Positions 3,901 to 64,000 of a stretch of 64,000 nucleotides of DNA are shown piece after piece. Within the stretch, counting starts at the first letter, position 1. The number at the start of each line of letters is the position of its first letter. Origin of the DNA: Macrostomum lignano (lineage: Eukaryota). The position numbers were made by a program, and so were the translations under genes. The notes beneath the pieces are model-generated. The model ran no database searches and had not been told where the DNA came from. It saw only the letters and a list, made by a program, of their open reading frames with translations. The stretch covers positions 620,001 through 684,000 of the forward strand of contig NIVC01000227.1 in the NCBI GenBank assembly GCA_002269645.1, written 5' to 3'.

Positions 3901-6900
3901 AATAGTTCAATCCTATCACAATAGTTCAATCCTATCACAATAGTTCAATCCTATCACAATAGTTCAATCCTATCACAATAGTTCAATCCTATCACAATAG
4001 TTCAATCCTATCACAATAGTTCAATCCTATCACAATAGTTCAATCCTATCACAATAGTTCAATCCTATCACAATAGTTCAATCCTATCACAATAGTTCAA
4101 TCCTATCACAATAGTTCAATCCTATCACAATAGTTCAATCCTATCACAATAGTTCAATCCTATCACAATAGTTCAATCCTATCACAATAGTTCAATCCTA
4201 TCACAATAGTTCAATCCTATCACAATAGTTCAATCCTATCACAATAGTTCAATCCTATCACAATAGTTCAATCCTATCACAATAGTTCAATCCTATCACA
4301 ATAGTTCAATCCTATCACAATAGTTCAATCCTATCACAATAGTTCAATCCTATCACAATAGTTCAATCCTATCACAATAGTTCAATCCTATCACAATAGT
4401 TCAATCCTATCACAATAGTTCAATCCTATCACAATAGTTCAATCCTATCACAATAGTTCAATCCTATCACAATAGTTCAATCCTATCACAATAGTTCAAT
4501 CCTATCACAATAGATCAATCCTATCACAATAGTTCAATCCTATCACAATAGTTCAATCCTATCACAATAGTTCAATCCTATCACAATAGATCAATCCTAT
4601 CACAATAGTTTAATCCTACCACAATAGATCAATCCTATCACAATAGTTCAATCCTATCACAATAGTTCAATCCTATCACAATAGTTCAATCCTATCACAA
4701 TAGTTCAATCCTATCACAATAGATCAATCCTATCACAATAGTTTAATCCTACCACAATAGATCAATACTTCTTACATTCCAACGCTGCACCAAATGAGGT
4801 GGAGAGTGTCGGTGCTGGTGCTGCAGGCACGGAAGGCAGACGGTCATTAAGTCACATTGCAAGCATCGGTAGCTATTTTCGCTGGTGTTGCCATGGCATA
4901 GTATGCATTTAACCGTTGGAGAAAAATGGTGACCAAATCCTGTTACGAATTCTGCAAAATGGTGATCCCATAGCTCTGCGGAATCATGCACCCGTTGATG
5001 ATGCGCAGAATAGACGAACTCAGCGTCAGGCTCCGGAAGTTCAGACGATTGCGTTTCCGGCCCTTAAACGAGGAGAATCAGAAACAGGGAAAGGTAAGCA
5101 TGCTTGACTTGACATGGTATTGCTTTGCACCAGATGGTGATGGGTATGACACAGGAAAGTTAAAAAATGACGATGAGATGAATTCTAAATTGGATGTAGC
5201 AATTAGATTGATATTATTTTAAGAGTTCAAAAAGGTTTTAAAAATTAAAAAGAAAGCTTTACTCTATCGAATTATAAAAAATCACAATAACATTTCTCTC
5301 ACAGGAGAGCTCTCTTTTTATGATACTACTTCTAGTATCTAAAGTATATGTTCCAGAAAATTATTATAGATAATGAGAGCATTCGGCTTTATTAACAGTC
5401 TATCTAATTAGTAAATTAAAAAGGACTAATTTCCGAGACTTTAAAGAGCAACTATTTTTATAATATAAGTCACCTATTCTACTCCAACCCCGGTCCACCA
5501 TTTTACCTACTTGGGAACACTGGTTTTACAAAAGACTATTATGAATTTGGAACAGTAACCAGAAGCAGTTGAAATTTTAGCTATTCGCATTCAAATCAGC
5601 CTCTGTGCAAAAAGCTGTGCAGTGCGGGACTTTTGCTTGCGGAGTTTTGCTTGCCGAAGTCTGCTGGCGGAGTTTTGCTTGCCGAAATCTGCTTGCCGAA
5701 GTCTGCTAGCGGAGTTTTGCTTGCCGAAGTCTGCTGGCGGAGTTTTGCTTGCCGAAGTCTGCTGGCGGAGTTTTGCTTGCCGAAGTCTGCTAGCGGAGTT
5801 TTGCTTGCCGAAGTCTGCTGGCGGAGTTTTGCTTGCCGAAGTCTGCTTGCCGAAGTCTGCTGGCGGAGTTTTGCTTGCCGAAGTCTGCTTGCCGAAGTCT
5901 GCTAGCGGAGTTTTGCTTGCCGAAGTCTGCTGGCGGAGTTTTGCTTGCCGAAGTCTGCTGGCGGAGTTTTGCTTGCCGAAGTCTGCTAGCGGAGTTTTGC
6001 TTGCCGAAGTCTGCTGGCGGAGTTTTGCTTGCCGAAGTCTGCTTGCCGAAGTCTGCTAGCGGAGTTTTGCTTGCCGAAGTCTGCTGGCGGAGTTTTGCTT
6101 GCCGAAGTCTGCTGGCGGAGTTTTGCTTGCCGAAGTCTGCTAGCGGAGTTTTGCTTGCCGAAGTCTGCTGGCGGAGTTTTGCTTGCCGAAGTCTGCTTGC
6201 CGAAGTCTGCTAGCGGAGTTTTGCTTGCCGAAGTCTGCTGGCGGAGTTTTGCTTGCCGAAGTCTGCTGGCGGAGTTTTGCTTGCCGAAGTCTGCTAGCGG
6301 AGTTTTGCTTGCCGAAGTCTGCTTGCCGAAGTTTTGCTTGCCGAAGTCTGCTTGCCGAACTTTGCTTGCCGAGCTTTGCTTGCAGGAAATTTGCTTGCTG
6401 CACATAAATTTGCCGAAGTTTGCTTGCAGAAATTTTGCTTGGCGAGGTTCGCCAGCCACAGTTTTCTTGCGGAACCTTAAAGAACCTATTAGTGAGCTTT
6501 TGTATTTCTATTTTTTATTTTCTAAGATTCGTGGAAGTCGCCTATAGTGTTATGATTTTGCATGAGGATATGGCGGATTTGAAAAGCCCTAGATGTTGAA
6601 ACTGGGAATACTGTTTCAACATCAGTACAGAATACAGAATAGATTTTTTGAAAACGAACGTACATTGTACATCAATGTACATCATTTCTATATACTAAAT
6701 ACTTAGAATGAAACTCTATAAGCCTAGTTTGAAAGCTTACTGTCAAGTCAGTTTACGTTGAATAAGAATCCACTTGCAAAGCATCTGTAGTAAGTAATAA
6801 TTGACTGACCAACTTCGCAAGTAATCAAAACAAGCAAGCAGACAAGCAAAATTCAAGTTCGGCAAGCAAAATTCCGCAAGCAAAGCTCGGCAAGCAAAAT

Positions 6901-8429
6901 TCCGCAAGCAAAGCTCCGCAAGCAAAGTTCGGCAAGCATAGCTCGGCAAGCAAAGTTCGGCAAGCATAGCTCCGCAAGCAAAGTTCGGCAAGCATAGCTC
7001 GGCAAGCAAAGTTCAGCAAGCAAAGCTCGGCAAGCAAAATTCCGCAAGCAAAGCTCCGCAAGCAAAGTTCGGCAAGCAAAGCTCGGCAAGCAAAGTTCAG
7101 CAAGCAAAGCTCGGCAAGCAAAATTCCGCAAGCAAAGCTCCGCAAGCAAAGTTCGGCAAGCAAAGCTCGGCAAGCAAAGTTCGGCAAGCATAGCTCGGCA
7201 AGCAAAGTTCGGCAAGCAAAGCTCGGCAAGCAAAGCTCGGCAAGCAAAATTCCGCAAGCAAAGCTCCGCAAGCAAAGTTCGGCAAGCAAAGCTCGGCAAG
7301 CAAAGTTCGGCAAGCATAGCTCGGCAAGCAAAGTTCGGCAAGCAAAGCTCCGCAAGCAAAGTTCGGCAAGCAAAGCTCGGCAAGCAAAGTTCGGTAAGCA
7401 TAGCTCGGCAAGCAAAGTTCAGCAAGCAAAGCTCGGCAAGCAAAATTCCGCAAGCAAAGCTCCGCAAGCAAAGTTCGGCAAGCAAAGCTCGGCAAGCAAA
7501 GTTCGGCAAGCATAGCTCGGCAAGCAAAGTTCAGCAAGCAAAGCTCGGCAAGCAAAGTTCGGCAAGCATAGCTCGGCAAGCAAAGCTCGGCAAGCAAAAT
7601 TCCGCAAGCAAAGCTCCGCAAGCAAAGTTCGGCAAGCAAAGCTCGGCAAGCAAAGTTCGGCAAGCATAGCTCGGCAAGCAAAGTTCAGCAAGCAAAGCTC
7701 GGCAAGCAAAGTTCGGCAAGCATAGTTCGGCAAGCAAAGTTCGGCAAGCAAAGCTCGGCAAGCAAAGTTCGGCAAGCATAGCTCGGCAAGCAAAGTTCGG
7801 CAAGCAAAGCTCGGCAAGCAAAGTTCGGCAAGCATAGCTCGGCAAGCAAAGTTCGGCAAGCAAAGCTCGGCAAGCAAAATTCCGCAAGCAAAGCTCCGCA
7901 AGCAAACTTCCTGCAAGCAAACGTCGTACTCCCTCCCGCATAGAGCATGGTGTGAGCCTTATATTGCCCGCTATTCCAAGCAGTTAGTTAACTTGCGGGC
8001 TTTATTTTTCAACCATTTGTCTATGCTTGCTCTATATGAGATAAAGCACGCTATTTTCCGGGCACTATTTACTTAGTGCCCTCGAGCTTTCGAGCTTTTC
8101 AAGACTAAAATTGTCCAGTGAACATTCATGAAAAGTGACCATTATACAGGAGGGTGACAAAATTCTATATTTGGTGTAGAATTTGCCTTGATTTGCAAAC
8201 AGTAGCACAACAGATGACTAAAAATATCACACCAATAAAAAATTTGTTACAGAGCACATCCTAAATGCAGCAAAAATCACTTACGGCTACTACATGATTC
8301 CGGATTTGAGGCACACACTCCCTTAGCAGGATGGCGCAACTGGCTGACAATTAATTGTTTTATAGCTTTCTGGCCAGGGCAACTGTATATTCTGGGCTTT
8401 CTTCTGCGATCTTCTTTTCGTCGTCCCAT
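904..8429 (-). CDS. Spliced CxC2/CxC3-KDZ (Zisupton/Kyakuja/Dileera-type) transposase-like gene, 3' part unresolved
   Basis: Hand-spliced exons 8429-8285, 5062-4776, 3571-3475, 3236-3013, 2416-2309 and 1202-904 have GT-AG introns with matching phases (1,0,1,0,0) and no stops over 386 codons. Motifs: CxxC..YRCxxC..CxxC..H..PxHxVQRWNG (CxC2-like), CxC..CSC..LLRNGFWP, CPAC, LLDACF, GLFSGICRHG..D..GEK (KDZ core). The exon after the phase-2 donor at 903 was not found. Confidence 0.85.
1243..1609 (-). mobile_element. tRNA-derived SINE in KDZ gene intron
   Basis: Minus strand starts GGGGCCGTAGCCCAGCGGTAG (A box), then GGCTCGATTCC (B-box-like), and ends in an A-rich tail. An 11-bp TSD (aacgtatgcat) lies at 1232-1242 and 1610-1620. 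Confidence 0.85.
1717..2243. mobile_element. Element bounded by ~58-bp inverted repeats (MITE-like)
   Basis: 1717-1774 is a near-perfect reverse complement of 2185-2243. The interior has no convincing ORF. Confidence 0.6.
3627..4765. repeat. 19-bp minisatellite (caatcctatcacaatagtt)n, ~60 copies, intronic
   Basis: Directly visible, highly homogeneous tandem array with variants only near the ends. Confidence 0.98.
5622..7940. mobile_element. Foldback-like element: two oppositely oriented arrays of a 14/28-bp subrepeat around a ~390-bp spacer
   Basis: The left array (ttttgcttgccgaagtctgctggcggag)n at ~5630-6440 and the right array (gcaagcaaagttcg/ctcg)n at ~6830-7920 are reverse-complement relatives. 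A related array starts at 63841. Confidence 0.7.
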
Positions 8430-17892: not shown

Positions 17893-19249
17893 TTAGAATT
17901 TGAACGTGCACCCATCGAAGAGGCAGTTGGCAAACATCGGCTGTTGCACACTTCGCAGGTCAACTTGAGCTTGCTGCATGACTGTTGCACTAGTGGTTGC
18001 ACTCGTAGTCGCATCGGTTGGTGGGGCCAAATTGTCACTAACAGCGGTAGCAACCTTCCTGAGGGTTCTGTCACGCTTGCGTGCGAGATAACGTCGAACA
18101 GTGGACTCCGATCGTTGTCCTGTTACCGCCATTATCTCCCCCATAGGCATTCCTTTGTCGAAAAGATCCGCAATACGCGTGACGCGTATGCAGTGATTCG
18201 TGTACTGCTTGGAGAGGTTGCACACACTACTAACGTGCTTCATGAATGCAGCCAACCAATTGACACCGCGCACTTGCGTAGCAGAGAATCGAATTTGTCC
18301 TCCCGAATTGTTAGTCAGAGGGCGCGGAAAGAACGAGGACGAATTCTGCGGTAACAAACTCTGATAATGCAGGATCAACTCCCGCTGAGCGCCGTAGATC
18401 CGACTCTGTTTGCGCTGATTTCCCTTGCATTTTGTTGGATCGCTAGTCTGGTTTTTTGTCTTTAACGGCGGCAACGCAAGATATGGATTCCCATCAGCGT
18501 CGACTTCTTCTTGGAGCGTGCCAACTTGCTTTAGACTTGAAAGGTGCTCTTGACATCTCTTGCCCAGGACATACAGCAGCGTAAATAGTACTTCATCTTG
18601 CAACCGTTCTGCTGTAGAACGGTCAAAATAAGCACGCATTTTCTGTAAATCACCTTCTTCTATTGGCTCGTGCTGATTGACAGTGCCTCCATCAGCATGA
18701 AAATGCCGCACCTTTACTCGCAGCATCCGGTTGGCAGTGGCGAACTCGTCACTGGAAATACGGCGTAATATTTGTTCGACGCTTCAGCACGAGAGTCAAG
18801 TACCTCTGCACTCCAGCACGAATGCAGACCAACGTAGCTGGCGAATAGCAACTGCCGTCAGATTTTTTTAGACAGAAGTAAAAGAACCTTAAAAATTCGG
18901 CCAAGCGACTGTCACTGATCACGCTTACATCCACAGCACCATGCTTCTTCAAAAACTCCACGAACATTTTGCCATACAGAAACATGTGTTCTCGTGTAGT
19001 GCTCGGCAGTGATTCCAGTTCGGCAACATCCATCGCACTGGGTAAATCAGATAGTTCTGGAAGCTCGACACTAGAAACCGCAGCGGCCTCATCAGCCGTC
19101 TCGATTTTAGTCAGGTAGTCGATAAAATCTCCAAGAATTTCATCGGAACTGTGGTTCACGGCGCTCAGTTCACTCAGAAAATCTAGTTCAGTAGACGAGA
19201 CGCCATCTAAACTGTCGACCGGTAGGTTTTTCCAGTTGATAAGAGGCAT
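17893..19249 (-). pseudogene. Crypton-like tyrosine recombinase (DUF3504-type), frameshifted
   Basis: Two ORFs (19249-18749 and 18726-17893) join through a 1-nt frameshift near 18760, restoring NI..DEFATANRML. Motifs: L..FLRFFY..LKK.DG..YSPATL..IRAGVQRYL, LGKR, YTNHCIRVT, TGQRSESTVRRY. Confidence 0.85.
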
Positions 19250-20760: not shown

Positions 20761-21182
20761 AAAATGAGTTTTTTTTTAGTTTTTATCGCCGGAAAAATTG
20801 TGAGGTCTCTAAGAATTTCCTCGCAAACTCGCTTTCCTTCCGTAGCAGATCAAATATTTTTGACGCGCACTGCTAATTAATACGAGCTGCTTCTTGACTG
20901 GAATAAATTAATAAATTTGGCTAATTAGCGGTTTGCACCTGGCAAAGTCAAGCCAGACTTACTATTAATTTGGCCAAATTGTTGAATTCCTGTCAATTTG
21001 AGACTGTCTCAACGCATCTGAATACTCACCTGTCATCAACGCTCTGTTGCAGGTGCGTTTGTGTAATCAACCTATCGTGTGCTTCTTCAAATTCAGCATA
21101 AATAACCGATGTATATTGCACTCAGAACTCGCAGGTAAACATTTTTGCTAACTGACCAAGGTATCTGCTTCAAGCAAACAGA

Positions 21183-22073
21183 ATGCCAACAAAGTCTTCG
21201 AGGCATCTTCTTCTTCTGGCGGCCACTGCGGCGCTTTTGTGCGCCATCGCGGCCGCCAATCTGCCTGATAGCTCCGGCGTCAGAGCCATCGACTGGAGCA
21301 GAAAGCACAAGGGCGGACAGCGCTGGAACAAAGGCGGACAACGTTGGAATAAAGGCGGACAGCGCTGGAACAAAGGCGGACAACGCTGGAATAAAGGCGG
21401 ACAGCGCTGGAACAAGGGCGGACAGCGTTGGAACAAGGGCGGACAGCGTTGGAACAAGGGCGGACAGCGCTGGAACAAAGGTGGACAGCGCTGGAACAAG
21501 GGCGGACAGCGTTGGAACAAGGGCGGACAGCGCTGGAACAAAGGTGGACAGCGCTGGAACAAGGGCGGACAGCGCTGGAACAAAGGCGGACAGCGTTGGA
21601 ACAAGGGCGGACAACGTTGGAATAAAGGCGGACAGCGTTGGAACAAGGGCGGACAACGTTGGAACAAGGGCGGACAGCGCTGGAACAAGGGCGGACAGTG
21701 GAACAAGGGCGGACAGCGCTGGAACAAGGGCGGACAACGTTGGATCAAGGGCGGACAACGTTGGAACAAGGGCGGACAGCGCTGGAACAAGGGCGGACAA
21801 CGTTGGAACAAGGGCGGACAGCGCTGGAACAAGGGCGGACAGTGGAACAAGGGCGGACAGCGCTGGAACAAGGGCGGACAGTGGAACAAAGGCGGACAGA
21901 GCTGGAACAAGGGCGGACAGCGCTGGAACAAGGGTGGACAACGTTGGAACAAAGATGGACAGCGCTGGAACAAGGGCGGACAACGTTGGAACAAAGGTGG
22001 ACAGCGCTGGAACAAAGGTGGACAGCGCTGGAACAGGAGCGGACAGCGTTGGAACAAGGGCGGAAGTTATTGA
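21183..22073 (+). CDS. Secreted Gly/Trp/Arg/Lys-rich repeat protein (signal peptide plus ~36 x GGQRWNK)
   Basis: ATG follows a putative 47-nt 5'UTR intron (GT 21135, branch-like ctaac/ctgac, AG 21180-81). Hydrophobic N-terminus LLLLAATAALLCAIAAA. Differences between repeat units are mostly synonymous in this frame (ggc/ggt, cag/caa, cgc/cgt, aac/aat, aag/aaa), and deletions remove whole codons. Confidence 0.85.
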   Translation: MPTKSSRHLLLLAATAALLCAIAAANLPDSSGVRAIDWSRKHKGGQRWNKGGQRWNKGGQRWNKGGQRWNKGGQRWNKGGQRWNKGGQRWNKGGQRWNKGGQRWNKGGQRWNKGGQRWNKGGQRWNKGGQRWNKGGQRWNKGGQRWNKGGQRWNKGGQRWNKGGQRWNKGGQWNKGGQRWNKGGQRWIKGGQRWNKGGQRWNKGGQRWNKGGQRWNKGGQWNKGGQRWNKGGQWNKGGQSWNKGGQRWNKGGQRWNKDGQRWNKGGQRWNKGGQRWNKGGQRWNRSGQRWNKGGSY

Positions 22074-22544
22074 ACCGTTTGCTACTCAACCAATCGGTGC
22101 TATGCTCTATGAACTCTGGTTTCTCCCACAATGAAAAATGAAATGAGAGTCTCTGTGTTAGTTTTTTCTTTTTATTGACTGGAACAATATAGCTGGAGTG
22201 TTCTTGTGTGAGTAGTATTTTGTGTATTTTTCTACGGAGCCCATATAATTATCGACAGTGATACAATATTTTCTTAATCATTCATGAATCTTGGGCGTTT
22301 TTTCGACATTTTTAGGGCGTTGATGATGATTGCTTTTACGAACGAAATGTCGTAGTAGCATCAGAATGATATCTAAAAGTTTTTTTGGCTTAATTTCTCA
22401 ATCTGGGCTTCGGTTACTGCTGCCTCCATGTCCCATATAGCCAATGCTTTCAAGTATTGAGTACCACATGGATTGTCACTGACAATAGCTGATGCATTAA
22501 GCCATATTTCAACATAGTTATTTGCGACGTAGTAGTTGTCTACT

Positions 22545-25150
22545 AGACGTAGTAGTAGTAGTCGACGTAGCGGTACGTGACTTACTTGACTTAGCTGCAG
22601 GGCTGTCCTGGGGGGGGGGCACAGCGGGAATGCGCGAACGTCCATTCCGCTAATCCCTGAACGGCCGACGCGTCGCTATAGACAAAGGGTTGGCGCCCCC
22701 CAGGGAGGTCCCCCAGTGTCGCCAGCAGCTATAGTGCTCTCTGGAAAGGAGAGTTCGGCCCTGCGGGTGGCCCGGAGGTAGCGCATGAGCTGATGAAAGT
22801 TTTCGGGTTTGCACACTTCAGTAATAGATGTGTGTGGCCCGAGGTAAGTGAGTCTGGCGGAAATGCTCAGCGGTTTCGTCACCTGAGTTACAGAAACTGC
22901 AGATGGCGTTGGTGGTGTTGCCCTGCAGGTACTGGTGCCTAGAGAAGCAGCTGTGACCTAGGAGGGTCATGGTGGCAGCCCGGATGTCTCTGCGCGAGAG
23001 GCGCAAGAGGAGCTTCCGGAGCAGGTGAGAGGGCTGAGGGACAGCACCTTTGGATTGCCTGCATGTAGTGCAGTTCGCCCAGGTCGAGCGGTGCTGGGTC
23101 CTGATCCACGCTTTGATGCGCGAGTCAATGACACAGCCAGGAATCGGGACAAGAGGTTCGGGACCGAGAGAGGAGCCGGAGGCGCCAACTTTGCAAGGGC
23201 GTCAGCCAACTCATTTCCTCGGATCCCCACATGCCCCGGAACCCACTTAAGGGTGATTTTGTTGGTGGAACCCAACATGTTGAGGAGTTTGATACAGTTG
23301 AGGACTGTAGCAGAATTGGTACTACAGCCACTGATGGCGTGCAAGGCAGCTTGGCTGTCCGAATGGAAAATGATGTTCTTACCGGTTACGCCAGTGGCGA
23401 GAAGCTCTGCCGTGCAGGAGCTGATGGCGAGAACTTCATTTTGGAAGACACTGAAGTTGACCCCAGTGTACTGAGCGTGGGTTGCGATGACCCTCTCGTT
23501 CAGGAAGATTCCAACACCAAAACCGGTGTTGGCTGACTGCTTAGAACCGTCGGTGTAGCAATGAAACTCACCAGGTTTCAAGTGGTCATTGATGGTATCG
23601 CGCGAGTCTATAGCTACGGAGTAGCGTTGTTTCAGGTTGAGCGTTGTTGAGGCAATGTCATCGGTGAAGACGCAATTGGCCTGACACTCGTTGAGAATGT
23701 TGAGGCACAGGTCGCTATGCGGGACGAGGTTCCGCTTAGCAGTTGCCCTCATGTAAATGAATTTGACACCGGCATCAAGTAAGCGCCGCATCGTTCTAGC
23801 CGCCTCACCCCTGACGAAGAGGTCGAGAGGCGGTAGATTAAGGAAGGCCCCATGCCGGCAAAGGGCGTGGACCTGGTGGCGTTGCAGATAAGCCTACACG
23901 CTCTGCCCTGGATCGTGTTGAGCAAATCTGCGTGGCTTTTGACCTGGGTAGCGCTAACCCAGACAACCGAGGCGTACGTAATGGCGGGTCTAACTACGGA
24001 AGTGTAGATCCACCAAAGCCGCTTTGGGGATAGACCCCAAGAAGTGCCAAGTGCTCGTCGGAGCTGGGCCAGGATGGCTGAGGCACGCTTGGCTTTTGCT
24101 TTCACGTGGAAGGACCAGTTGAGCCGGTGGTCAAGTATGACCCTAAGACATCTGGTCTGGTGCGCGAAGGCAATATCTCTGCCGTATAACTGCAGAGGTC
24201 GTATGTTCCAGCGTATTCTGCTGGTGAACATAATGGCAACAGTTTTGGGCTCAGAGAGTTCCAGACCGTTGTCATTGGCCCAGGATTCGGCTTTGCGGAT
24301 AAAGCTCTGCATCAGATCCCTGAGCGTGCTGGGAGACGGTCCTGCCACAATGGCAGTGACGTCGTCAGCATGCCCGACTTTGAAGACGGGATCAGGTCGT
24401 GAGTCGCCCAGGAGAGCGTCCATGACCAGGTTCCAGAGCGTCGGGGTGAGGACTCCGCCTTGGGGTCCACCCTTACAGACTCTGGTGGAGGCAGTTTGCC
24501 CAAGAAGTTGGGCAGTGACCGTACGGTTGGAGATCATGTACATGATCCACCGTATGAGGGTAGCGTGAGCTTTGCGGTTTTGAAGGGCCCTCTGAAACGC
24601 TTCAAAGATAACGTTGTCGAAGGCGCCAATAATGTCGAGAAAAAGAGCCAGGGCGTTACCGTCACCAAGTACTACCCGTTCAATCTTCTCGACAATCGCA
24701 TGCAGGGCGCTGTCAGTCGACCTGGTACGGAAGGCGTGCTGATTATTGCTTGAGGGGCATTGCTGTCAGCTCGCATGAAAGCAGCGACCAGAGCTTGCTG
24801 ACGTTAAGCTAATTGGCCTAAAGGCCTTGACGCTCTGGTAGTTCACCCTTCCCGGGTTTGGGAATGAAGACTACCCGAGCTTTGGTCCAGCACTTGGGAA
24901 CGTATCCCAGCTGGATAGAGGCCCGCATGAGATTGCGAGTCTCAAGAACGAGGGTATATTGGCTGCTTCACGAAGAAGAACAGGGTAGATACCATCAGGT
25001 CCAGGAGATTTGAAGGGCTTGAAGGTTCTGACCGCACGAGCGATTAAGTCTTCAGTGATAATGCCCGCCGCTAGGGTGGCTCCCCTGACCAGGCCAGCTG
25101 ACTCCCGCTCTGCTGCGACCCCCTGCTGTCTCGGTTCTGTCTCCCACTCA
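22545..25150 (-). mobile_element. 5'-truncated, decayed non-LTR retrotransposon with RT + RNase H (I-group, Loa/Tad1/R1-like)
   Basis: KPFKSPGPDGI, GGPQGGVLTPTLWNL, HADDV (degenerate YADD), RNase H YTDGSK..SDSQAAL..WVPGHVGIRGNELAD, C-terminal CSFC..ETAEH, and a (CTA)n-like tail near 22550. At least four frame changes. Confidence 0.92.
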
Positions 25151-34199: not shown

Positions 34200-35330
34200 T
34201 CATCCAGCAGCGGTGGTCCTAATATTGTACGCCGTCGTCACCGAGGTGGCCAGGTTGATGCCCGACGACTCCTTCGCTGACGCCTTTCGGCGCCTGCCGC
34301 ACAGGCCAGCGGTTGCCAGGCAGATGGCGCCCCCAATCGTCTGGCAGAAGGCCGTACGAAAGCTTCGTCCAATGAAGTAAGCAAACGGATCGAAAATGCT
34401 GTTCAAGAACATGAAGCCCTCCAAAACTTGATTGCCCAAGTCTAACTGGCTCTCGGTTAGTTGTTTGCTCGGCGACAAGTACCTGGCGCTGTAGCCTTCG
34501 TACACAGAGAAGGCCGCCCTGGGCGCGTGCGTCAGGAAGAACACGAGGTTCATGCCGATCATCGCGGCGCAGGCGCCGACCATTTTGTTGCGCTTCAGGT
34601 TGGCCGAGCCGCTGGTCAGGCGGCTCAACTTGCTGGCCTGAAGCCGAAGCGCAACGGCCACGATGATGCATCCGGATAGAAGAACAAAGAACAGTGCCAC
34701 CTTTGACACGTAGAACTCGATATTGTACTGCAGTGGGTCCAAGACGGCCAACAATGCTTCGTCAGTCCTGCTATCGCAGCGGTTGTCAATGTACTCTTGC
34801 TCGGCAGACCACAGGGCCGGGTCAATGCTGCCTAACAGAAACAGAATGATTAGCATGATGCAGTGGTTGCGTCCAGTCATGATTGTCTTCACTTTCAGCG
34901 GCATCACCACGGCTAGGACGCGTTCAACTGTAAGTCCAACGTGAAAGTACGGCGTTCCATTCAGTATGTACTTGTGGACATAGTTGACAATGTAACACGC
35001 GGCCGCGTTTTCGTTCATGAGCTTCAGAAACGGGGACAGTTTGTAGTTCATTGTGCGCATCAAGTAGATCTGGTAGCAGTTGAAGCCGCCGATTGCCAGC
35101 GAAAGCGCGTCGAAGCTGGTAATGATCAACATCGTGCGCCTCGATATTTTAGGGAAAGTCTTCGAGTTGAGTAGGATGGTGATGAAGCAGAGAACGTTGA
35201 CGACTATTCCGAAAACCATTAAAGTTGGCATCAGCCAAATGACGATGTTAGTGAAGGCCCAGCGCCAGCTGGGAATTTCAAACCAAGGCAGTTCTTCTTC
35301 TTCGGCTGTACTATTGCTGCTGTCGTACAT
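34200..35330 (-). CDS. Class A (rhodopsin-like) GPCR, peptide-receptor-like, intronless, 376 aa
   Basis: Seven hydrophobic segments, TM1 GIVVN, TM3 C..TVERVLAV, TM6 FFLTHAP, TM7 NSIFDPFAY (DPxxY variant), an N-terminal N-glycosylation sequon and a C-terminal Cys. Confidence 0.93.
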   Translation of the reverse strand: MYDSSNSTAEEEELPWFEIPSWRWAFTNIVIWLMPTLMVFGIVVNVLCFITILLNSKTFPKISRRTMLIITSFDALSLAIGGFNCYQIYLMRTMNYKLSPFLKLMNENAAACYIVNYVHKYILNGTPYFHVGLTVERVLAVVMPLKVKTIMTGRNHCIMLIILFLLGSIDPALWSAEQEYIDNRCDSRTDEALLAVLDPLQYNIEFYVSKVALFFVLLSGCIIVAVALRLQASKLSRLTSGSANLKRNKMVGACAAMIGMNLVFFLTHAPRAAFSVYEGYSARYLSPSKQLTESQLDLGNQVLEGFMFLNSIFDPFAYFIGRSFRTAFCQTIGGAICLATAGLCGRRRKASAKESSGINLATSVTTAYNIRTTAAG

Positions 35331-43496: not shown

Positions 43497-44843
43497 TCAA
43501 AGTGGAACACCACTCTGTTGCTGTCTCCAAAAGCCTCCATCCAGAGGAGGCAAGGGCACTTGCACCTGCGTCGCAGTCACCCGAGACTCACTCACCGGTT
43601 GGCCGGTTGAGGAACCACTCAACAGTGCACTCGTGCGTTTCTCCATGGTCACCGAGGTACCGATGTACTTCTCCACTGCACTGGAGCTGTGGCCAGTCAC
43701 ACGGCAGATATCCGCCCGTTCCATACCAGCCTCGCGGAGACGGGTTGCGCAACTCTTACGGAGACTCTGATTCGAGTAGCGTCCAGTGTCAGAGGGAGCA
43801 ACCACGGCGTCCTTGACGACGGTTGCCAATGAATGACGTCCAATCGGTGCCCTTGTCAACCAGGCAGATCCAGGCTGGCCATTCCAGTTTCGATTCCATC
43901 CCAGAAACAGCGCCTCGTTGCACTCATTAGGACGCACAGAGACGTACTGCTTGTAGACGCACAAAATGCATTTTTGGTGATTCTCAGTGTGGAAAGCACG
44001 AACGACTTTGGGGTCCCTTCGTAGTCCTTGTAAGCCGCCCTGATGAGTTTTGGTCACGGCATTGTCCACATACTTCAGACACTCTTCATCGTCAACCGTC
44101 TCAAGCTTGATTTGGCGATCGAACAGCAGATCTCGTAACTCCTGGCCACCACGCAATGCAAAGTGTTCGCCAACGAGCCAAACAAGCGTGATCACCAGCA
44201 TCTTGGGTTCCTTCACTCCAAGCACACCTTCGATCTAAAGCTTCTCTTCAATAGACTCGGGGATCACATCTGCCTTCCGCAATCCTGCACCCTTTCCAGC
44301 CTTGGTCGAGATTTTCATGGCGGTATCTAGAGCACGTTTACTGTCGGCGAACTCTTTGTCAAGCCAGAAGCTCCAATTCTTATTGAACGTGTTTTGCCAG
44401 TGATACTGTAGCATTGAATACAGATCCTTCAGCGTCGACACAGAGTAGCGCTCACCATCTTTGTTCCGGGCCTCCATAACAAAAAATTTCAGCAGGTAAT
44501 TCAGGTCACATTTGCTAGCATCCTCCAGCTCAGCGAGAACCATAAGTGACGGGCCTTCACCCATCGCCCAGGCACGCTTCTTCTCGTCATGCCACTCGCG
44601 GAAGACGGAAAAGGCCCACTGCGCCTTTTTCTTGGTGGTCTTCGGCACGGTCTCTTCAATGTGTCTGGCAATTTCATTCTCTGAAAGTTGCTCGAACCGG
44701 CCGGTGAGAGCGGCTTCAATAGGTCCAGCGTTATCCCCGGGCTTCAGGATGAAATCCAGTAGGTCCGGCGAAATCTCCATATCCGGGGCTTCAACAACGA
44801 CAGCAGCAGAGATGTCACCCATATTCGGTACCAAGCTACACAC
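43497..44843 (-). pseudogene. Crypton-like tyrosine recombinase (DUF3504-type) with one in-frame TAG
   Basis: ORFs 44843-44235 and 44225-43497 are in the same frame. The TAG at 44235-37 sits where the family has Trp (EEKL*IEGVLG vs EE.LW..G.LG). Motifs: L.KFFVMEARNKDGERYS..TL, FALRGGQE, KTHQGGL, YSNQSLRKSCAT, TGHSS.AVEKY. Confidence 0.9.
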
Positions 44844-55555: not shown

Positions 55556-60112
<4,557 letters not shown>

Positions 60113-63800: not shown

Positions 63801-63840
63801 TTCAAATACATACATGGTATGGATGGACGGGTCTATGAAA

Positions 63841-64000
63841 TTTGCTTGCGAGACTTTTGCTTGCCGAACTTTGCTTGCCGAACTTTGCTTGCCGAACTTT
63901 GCTTGCCGAATTTTGCTTGCAGGAAATTTGCTTGCCGAACTTTGCTTGCCGAACTTTGCTTGCCGAACTTTGCTTGCAGGAACTTTGCTTGCCGAACTTT
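63841..64000. repeat. Start of another (gccgaactttgctt)n array of the Foldback-like family; runs off the window
   Basis: The unit is the reverse complement of the 6830-7920 array. It begins with tgcgagacttttgcttgc, like tgcgggacttttgcttgc at 5622. Confidence 0.9.

Follow-up and report, generated by a model that had tools for sequence, protein, structure and literature searches.

A 64,000-nucleotide stretch of the Macrostomum lignano genome (contig NIVC01000227.1, positions 620,001 to 684,000 of the forward strand; hereafter the window, in which all positions are counted) contains a putative gene for a secreted tandem-repeat protein. On the + strand, an open reading frame (ORF) at 21183-22073 runs from an ATG to a TGA (22071-22073) and encodes 296 amino acids (aa). 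The predicted protein comprises, in order, a signal-peptide-like start, an 18-aa spacer, 36 repeat units and the tail GGSY (Table 1). The first segment, M1-A25, follows an n-h-c pattern (MPTKSSRH, then LLLLAATAALLCAIAAA, with N as the next residue) whose core consists of 17 uncharged hydrophobic or small residues, and its Kyte-Doolittle mean reaches 2.6 over a nine-residue span. In a heuristic scan, a small-residue site (A-A-A before N26) that agrees with the -3/-1 rule was found to close this core. The final 21 nucleotides (nt) of the spacer (21291-21311) resembled a degenerate repeat unit in which the Arg of position 4 and the Lys of position 7 are kept, and 10 of the 21 bases were identical to the unit when the two were aligned by eye.

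Among the 36 units, 28 read GGQRWNK and three read GGQWNK, while GGQRWIK, GGQSWNK, DGQRWNK, GGQRWNR and SGQRWNK occurred once each. Tandem Repeats Finder (TRF) placed the array at 21307-22064, with a period of 21 and 36.5 copies. Acidic residues were limited to three Asp, with no Glu, across the 296 aa. This layout had been described in an original prediction made from the letters of the window, which listed a signal-peptide-like N-terminus, a short spacer ending in RKHK, about 36 heptads and scarce acidic residues. All of these elements were verified, and both the ORF and its repeat unit were confirmed. The array was open in all six frames, so that an open frame alone has no evidential value.

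Codon-level constraint within the array

The 36 units were aligned in register and the variant cells were counted per column. Minor bases at columns 3, 9, 12, 18 and 21 numbered 6, 9, 14, 3 and 12, respectively. All five of these recurrently variable columns correspond to codon position 3 of the ATG frame, and they contained transitions only and synonymous changes only. The variants at columns 1, 2, 10, 17 and 20 were five singletons, all non-synonymous. As a result, 44 of the 49 variant cells were synonymous in the sense frame. A permutation analysis was performed in which the ten observed variants were re-dealt over the 21 columns, with the copy number and the transition/transversion class of each variant kept. 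At least 44 of 49 synonymous cells were obtained with a probability of 2.8e-4 in this frame, 0.0046 in any + frame and 0.0095 in any of the six frames. Furthermore, the five commonest variants were exactly the five synonymous ones (P = 1/252). The Nei-Gojobori method applied to the 33 full-length units gave proportions of synonymous (pS) and non-synonymous (pN) differences of 0.47 and 0.018, corresponding to a pN/pS of 0.038. The unit holds two CpGs, which allow four possible CpG transitions, and the synonymous GGC to GGT change was the only one seen. All three indels were losses of 3 nt that each removed a CGC (Arg) codon, perhaps representing just one to three independent events.

The other 14 minisatellites of the window, each aligned to its own consensus, were analysed by the same procedure as a control. 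Their indels had lengths of -1, -2, +1, +4 and -14, and in the arrays whose period is a multiple of three the recurrent variants did not gather in a single phase. The 21-bp array at 21312-22058 was thus alone among the arrays of the window in showing codon-phase-biased variation. These results bore out three claims of the original prediction, namely that unit variation falls at wobble positions, that deletions take whole codons and that the array differs in both respects from the non-coding minisatellites around it. The array also passed the formal test for an excess of synonymous variation that had been named there as a way to disprove the gene. Collectively, the data support the array acting as a coding sequence under purifying selection.

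Strand assignment

When the array is read antisense, as (LFQRCPP)n, its third positions fall on the same columns as those of the sense frame, and 45 of the 49 variant cells are synonymous, marginally above the sense value. The wobble evidence therefore indicates coding in one of two frames and not on the + strand specifically. The codon-level constraint that had been proposed stands, whereas the strand cannot be taken from the wobble pattern as had been assumed.

The strand was instead assessed from other features. ATGs in all six frames of the window, 1,974 in total, were scanned for a start followed by a basic n-region, an uncharged hydrophobic core of 12 residues, small residues at -3/-1 and an open frame of 45 codons. 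The ATG at 21183 was the sole signal-peptide-like start, and the array lies in frame 43 codons downstream of it. The sense stop is located 12 nt beyond the last full unit. In the antisense frame, stops occur directly upstream of the array, at 22069-22067 and at further positions, no ATG was found and no AG is present between the last stop and the array. The CGC deletion causes an exact loss of Arg in the sense frame, whereas it would convert Gln-Arg into His in the antisense frame. The wobble column of TGG was invariant; it would be a free TTC/TTT site if antisense, whereas a G-to-A change there would create a stop if sense. Codon usage was compared by relative synonymous codon usage (RSCU) against 1,093 reference codons from the kinesin light chain and G-protein-coupled receptor (GPCR) genes of the window. 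The sense array had a mean ln RSCU of +0.115, whereas the value of the antisense array was -0.185; the latter would need the rare codon TGT (RSCU 0.19 in the reference set) 36 times.

A minus-strand gene would use the array as an exon encoding a Cys/Pro-rich repeat whose wobble positions coincide with those of the + frame. Such a gene could conceivably have an internal splice acceptor, given that each unit on the minus strand provides a pyrimidine tract followed by CAG, but its non-repeat tail has neither a signal nor any other recognisable feature. Taken together, the start, the antisense stops, the exact codon loss, the invariant TGG column and the codon usage favour the + strand, on which the array is very probably coding. 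Separately, the units at 21170-22057 read on the minus strand as CCGCCCTTGTTCCAG/CG, which amounts to 36 splice-acceptor-like sites in a row and could matter if antisense transcription occurs.

Properties of the predicted product

The predicted mature chain, N26-Y296, has 271 aa, a mass of 31.8 kDa and an isoelectric point of about 12. It contains 72 Lys and Arg versus three Asp, giving a net charge of about +69. The chain contains 26.9% Gly, 13.7% each of Trp and Lys, 13.3% each of Asn and Gln and 12.9% Arg, and six residue types account for 97% of it. The protein has 37 Trp, and one Tyr in its 296 aa. No N-glycosylation sequon except one accidental NRS was present in the protein, and the WxxW motif for C-mannosylation was absent. 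Ser and Thr were nearly absent, and the protein is not mucin-like. Neither Gly-Lys nor Gly-Arg, as in the X-G-K/R amidation signal, occurs anywhere in the protein, and no dibasic pair was found within the array. The pro-region is not anionic (two Asp versus three Arg/Lys and one His). The composition and the n-h-c pattern agree with the previously claimed Gly-rich polycation with regularly spaced Trp and a predicted signal peptide, and the claimed lack of G-K/R amidation signals was likewise correct. Given that the gene is coding, secretion of its product is highly probable.

Single-sequence prediction by AlphaFold produced one long helix that was broken at the six-residue units. Only one of the five models was confident (predicted local distance difference test score of 74.9 versus 36-56), and the predicted template modelling score was 0.29. 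Since each heptad has two Gly and the confidence was low, the helix was discounted and the chain was treated as flexible or disordered. A coiled-coil heptad protein was rejected because each heptad has one hydrophobic residue and two Gly and a helix appeared in one of five models. A GW/WG Argonaute-hook protein was also rejected, as the Trp lies between Arg and Asn and a signal peptide is predicted.

Search for relatives

No match to the repeat protein was found in Pfam, and a word-seeded search of 5.8 billion proteins gave no hit to it. An exhaustive phmmer search of 1.84 billion cluster representatives returned 695 hits. Sixteen of these were inspected and rejected as relatives, since they proved to be unrelated heptad sequences of low complexity (GGTNFNQ, SLQRLNK, GGRRWVR, DISGQRV and similar). 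The N-terminus was aligned in just four of the 150 hits listed, and the three of these that were inspected were unrelated too. The exact protein and ten other ORFs of the window were absent from a collection of 15 billion proteins. At the DNA level, a degenerate two-unit pattern had no match in metagenome contigs. A pattern for WNKGGQRW matched once, in isolation, in each of two metagenome contigs and in a viral contig; none of these matches was tandem, and they were judged to be due to chance. A full-text literature search for GGQRWNK and its sub-strings retrieved no relevant paper. The Pfam, 5.8-billion-protein and phmmer searches are therefore in line with the earlier statement that the family was not recognised. 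On present evidence, it is the product of an uncharacterised orphan gene without assigned function.

Flanking sequences and other content of the window

The features of the repeat gene and its surroundings are listed in Table 1. The GT..AG stretch in the leader has a good donor (CAG/GTAAAC), a branch-like CTAAC and an acceptor, rich in A/C and lacking a pyrimidine tract, that resembles the acceptors of the three kinesin light chain introns in the window. It could be a 5' untranslated region intron or a trans-splice acceptor. A transcription start about 25-30 nt past the TATA-like element (21124-21130) would leave an exon 1 of about 5-11 nt, which makes the intron doubtful. The stretch lies upstream of the ATG and no ATG occurs within 21124-21182, so the ORF is intact whether spliced or not. 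Splicing of 21135-21181, which had been offered as a refuting criterion, is thus invalid as a test of the gene.

Table 1 Features of the repeat gene and of its surroundings in the window. The TATA-like, initiator-like and poly(A) entries are putative; these elements, the spacer and the tail were read directly from the sequence.
Feature	Position	Strand	Remarks
TATA-like element CATAAATAA	21097-21105	+	about 80 nt upstream of the ATG
Initiator-like TCAGAA	21122-21127	+	
GT..AG stretch, 47 nt (CAG/GTAAAC ... CTAAC ... AAACAG/A)	21135-21181	+	entirely within the 5' leader
Start codon and signal-peptide-like segment M1-A25	21183-21257	+	n-region MPTKSSRH, h-region L9-A25, AAA before N26
Spacer/pro-region N26-K43 (NLPDSSGVRAIDWSRKHK)	21258-21311	+	ends in RKHK
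Coding tandem array, consensus GGCGGACAGCGCTGGAACAAG = GGQRWNK	21312-22058	+	36 units of 21 nt, three of them 18 nt
Truncated final unit, tail GGSY and TGA stop (22071-22073)	22059-22073	+	
Two overlapping AATGAA hexamers	22130-22142	+	possible variant poly(A) signals about 60 nt past the stop
Non-LTR (long terminal repeat) retrotransposon fragment	22967-24543	-	overlapping ORFs with RVT_1 and RNase H; about 900 bp past the repeat gene stop, opposite strand
Intronless 376-aa ORF	34200-35330	-	rhodopsin-family seven-transmembrane Pfam match (E 5.6e-10); about 12 kb from the repeat gene
Crypton-like elements/derivatives	43497-44843, 17893-18726	-	DUF3504, phage-integrase-type tyrosine recombinase and QRICH1-type domain
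Kinesin light chain gene	55556-60112	-	four exons (about 60112-59710, 59159-58644, 57355-57062, 56497-55556)

Two homeodomain-type cores (TAATTA) are located at 20870-20930, along with additional ATTAAT motifs, at a distance of 250-310 bp upstream of the ATG. Across the window, TAATTA is over-represented (50 observed versus 28 expected), and the upstream cluster is therefore not clearly meaningful. No flank repeats, paralogues or terminal repeats bracketing the gene were found in the window, where its flanks are single-copy; there is thus no sign of the gene belonging to a mobile element. The Crypton-like group includes a second integrase-like ORF, which is weaker and is located upstream of the repeat gene.

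Approximately 10.7 kb (17%) of the 64-kb window consists of minisatellites with units of 13-39 bp, mostly in 10-60 copies and with unrelated consensus sequences. The arrays at 5634-6398, 6855-7921 and 63837-64000 share the motif TGCTTGCCGAA in 14/28-bp units. The second of these is the reverse complement of the first at a distance of about 450 bp, forming an inverted minisatellite pair, and the third continues beyond the window end. Minisatellites were also found within the kinesin light chain gene, whose introns (549, 1288 and 564 nt) each consist mostly of one different array (59354-59677, 57396-58539 and 56592-57011). Its last exon carries long poly-Gln insertions. The best hits of this gene were 46-48% identical and came from molluscs, annelids, arthropods, amphioxus and vertebrates alike, while the TPR exon showed 86% identity to a Capitella protein. 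No flatworm or other taxon provided a close hit, which points to a fast-evolving metazoan. The ORF at 34200-35330 had no hit at E <= 1e-10 among the 5.8 billion proteins and appears to encode a very divergent orphan GPCR. No Rfam match was found over the whole window.

Discussion

Sequence statistics established peptide-level purifying selection on an otherwise minisatellite-like array that is preceded by a signal-peptide-like start. We propose that a lineage-restricted gene on the + strand, with 21183-22073 as its single coding exon, encodes a preprotein that would be routed into the secretory pathway by its N-terminal signal peptide. The array grows and homogenises through unequal exchange, as neighbouring minisatellites do, while selection holds both the frame and the peptide unit and synonymous variants alone spread; the sequence statistics bear this out. 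Outside the cell, the flexible Gly-rich polycation would stay largely intact and could make multivalent electrostatic contacts, together with cation-pi and pi-pi contacts of its Trp, with polyanions, for example sulfated glycans and phosphoproteins, or with microbial envelopes or charged surfaces of that kind. It might then serve as a coacervating or cohesive part of a secreted material (adhesive, mucus or capsule), or as a surface-coating defence polycation that damages microbial envelopes. Both the adhesive/coacervate and the antimicrobial roles are suggested by composition. As each heptad has one Gln and one Lys, cross-linking by transglutaminase would be possible as well, which is put forward as an idea only. 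A bacterial transglutaminase has been assayed on a synthetic peptide containing GGGQRWRQ as a candidate Gln substrate (PMC5612097), a weak lead rather than evidence.

We consider the chances about even that a + strand gene encodes a secreted protein acting as an intact extracellular polycation. This judgement is roughly the product of three estimates, those for + strand coding, for secretion and for the intact polycation; the last, that the protein would act intact rather than as a peptide precursor, seems reasonably probable.

Several points weigh against this proposal. The wobble signal stems from about five mutational events that were amplified afterwards by repeat turnover, and the any-frame P of 0.0095 fails correction for the approximately ten window arrays with a period divisible by 3, although the P for the a-priori frame survives it. 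The signal-peptide criteria were heuristic, not those of SignalP, and were drawn up after the sequence was seen. The canonical AATAAA was not found within 250 nt downstream of the gene. The long-helix model from AlphaFold is unreliable and adds no structural support. The functional part of the proposal comes from composition only; with one Tyr, 3,4-dihydroxyphenylalanine (Dopa) chemistry is not available, and no partner polyanion is known. Finally, R-x-x-K followed by G in every unit suits a processing alternative. The original interpretation was thus sound with respect to the constraint, the secreted Gly-rich polycation and the unrecognised family, whereas its strand argument and intron criterion failed and the convertase motif had been overlooked.

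The alternative that survives best, although we regard it as unlikely, is a multi-copy peptide precursor. Once the signal peptide is removed, a convertase-type cut after Lys in R-W-N-K-G and in RKHK-G would release about 36 copies of GGQRWNK, or of GGQRWN after trimming by carboxypeptidase, giving a signalling or bioactive peptide without amidation. The general proprotein convertase motif, (K/R)-Xn-(K/R) with cleavage after the second basic residue (Seidah and Prat), is matched with n = 2 by each unit and by the end of the spacer. The architecture also fits, with a signal peptide, a short pro-region ending in a basic cluster and then abutting near-identical short units, and the strong conservation at every peptide position (pN/pS 0.04) is typical of paracopies. 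The lack of amidation signals had been held against such a precursor; the signals are indeed absent, but the precursor is not thereby excluded, because R-x-x-K-G recurs in every unit. Clustered consecutive copies and non-amidated multi-copy peptides are known in several animal groups (10.1101/265579). Motif screens for multi-copy neuropeptides demand dibasic or G-[KR] motifs, and the array, with neither dibasic sites nor a Gly-basic amidation signal, fails them (10.1101/265579). Moreover, Lys is a poor P1 residue for convertases, each predicted peptide would have an internal Arg, and the P4 Arg is missing in 4 of the 36 units. Acidic spacers are absent and a charge of +69 is unusual for a precursor, and protein searches and Pfam revealed no similarity to known neuropeptide families.

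Less probable still is a non-coding minisatellite in which one more tandem array happens to follow an accidental ATG and hydrophobic stretch. Minisatellites occupy about 17% of the window, the array is open in each of the six frames, and as few as five mutations followed by repeat turnover could give the wobble pattern. Nor is the any-frame P compelling once the candidate arrays are corrected for, and the protein searches revealed no homologue. However, a chance ORF is hard to reconcile with the P of 2.8e-4 for the frame fixed a priori and with the perfect split of recurrent and singleton variants by synonymy. The codon-exact indels, as opposed to the frame-breaking ones of other arrays, also argue against it. 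In addition, the only signal-peptide-like start of 1,974 ATGs sits exactly in frame, the stop directly follows the array and the codon usage is like that of the real genes of the window. The minus-strand gene is, on the strand evidence given above, extremely improbable.

With regard to the origin of the intact polycation or its precursor counterpart, a speculative and rather unlikely scenario is a minisatellite-born gene. A 21-bp array would have gained a start codon and a signal peptide, fallen under selection at the peptide level and continued to evolve as a minisatellite. It would have become either a secreted material protein of a new class, with Trp instead of Dopa providing cation-pi cohesion or coacervation, or a 36-copy precursor of a hitherto unknown non-amidated hexapeptide, GGQRWN. 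If expressed, the locus would represent a clean coding array among non-coding minisatellites, with a selection signature visible within a single allele. It could then be used to study the interplay of repeat turnover and purifying selection and the origin of orphan secreted proteins.

Comparison with known systems

Multi-copy neuropeptide precursors, such as those for cnidarian RFamide and RWamide and those of xenacoelomorphs, likewise have a signal peptide, a short pro-region and consecutive near-identical units with basic ends. The repeat protein differs from them in having no dibasic sites or Gly amidation donor, in its extreme charge and in the lack of family-level similarity.

Trp/Arg-rich antimicrobials such as indolicidin, tritrpticin, the lactoferricin core RRWQWR and synthetic (RW)n have 6-40 residues with clustered Trp and Arg, and usually an anionic pro-piece. 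The repeat protein resembles them in being cationic with Trp and in having an R-W dipeptide in its consensus unit. In contrast, its unit has a single Trp and a charge of +2 per seven residues, and its pro-piece is not anionic. As Trp and Arg are not clustered and an anionic pro-piece is absent, assignment to the class of short Trp/Arg-rich antimicrobial peptides was rejected on structural grounds.

The nearest functional analogues are basic proteins of low complexity that are secreted in invertebrate adhesives. Among marine adhesives, Pc-1 of the sandcastle worm is a Gly/Lys/Tyr decapeptide repeat. The Pc-1, Pc-2, Pc-4 and Pc-5 proteins of this animal (Phragmatopoma) share with the repeat protein a leading signal peptide (predicted in the latter), basicity, repetitiveness and very few residue types. 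They are basic and highly repetitive with limited amino-acid diversity, and coacervate with a polyanionic partner (PMC4275877). However, their aromatic residue is Tyr/Dopa, their unit length is different and they have a polyphosphoserine partner, Pc-3, for which no counterpart is known here; there is no homology.

The mussel protein Mfp-3f has 25-29 mol% Gly, 10-18 mol% Asn and 26 mol% basic residues (PMC5132118). Similarly, the repeat protein is predicted to be secreted and is of low complexity and strongly basic, with 27 mol% Gly, 13 mol% Asn and 27 mol% Lys+Arg. In both, between a seventh and a fifth of the residues are of one aromatic type, with Trp here replacing Dopa, and surface drying and self-coacervation of Mfp-3s have been credited in part to its Trp (PMC5132118). 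In contrast to the repeat protein, which is about 32 kDa with a 36-fold heptad array, one Tyr and 37 Trp, Mfp-3 has 5-7 kDa and no perfect tandem array, and its Tyr is converted into Dopa; the two are not homologous. The Gly-rich, basic, low-complexity character of Dopa-type marine adhesives (Mfp-3/5 and Pc-1/2) was therefore found, whereas abundant Tyr and homology were not, and membership of this class was rejected.

In the flatworm protein Mlig-ap1 (Macrostomum lignano), K/R-rich regions provide charge-based cohesion with polyanionic glycans that can be blocked by heparin (PMC6410801). Mlig-ap1 is secreted, as is predicted for the repeat protein, and both have extremely basic repeat regions and lack homologues. 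However, Mlig-ap1 exceeds 5,000 aa and contains lectin, vWD and EGF domains, and its repeats are rich in K/R/P/S and not in Trp.

Lineage-specific secreted tandem-repeat proteins are well known, whereas the GGQRWNK unit, the reliance on Trp and the extreme charge appear not to be. If expressed, the protein would be a compact natural Trp-based polycationic repeat polymer, with 36 near-perfect heptads, a charge of +69 and 14% Trp. The same chemistry has been explored synthetically in cation-pi coacervates, wet adhesion and RW-type antimicrobials, while the well-studied natural models use Tyr/Dopa.

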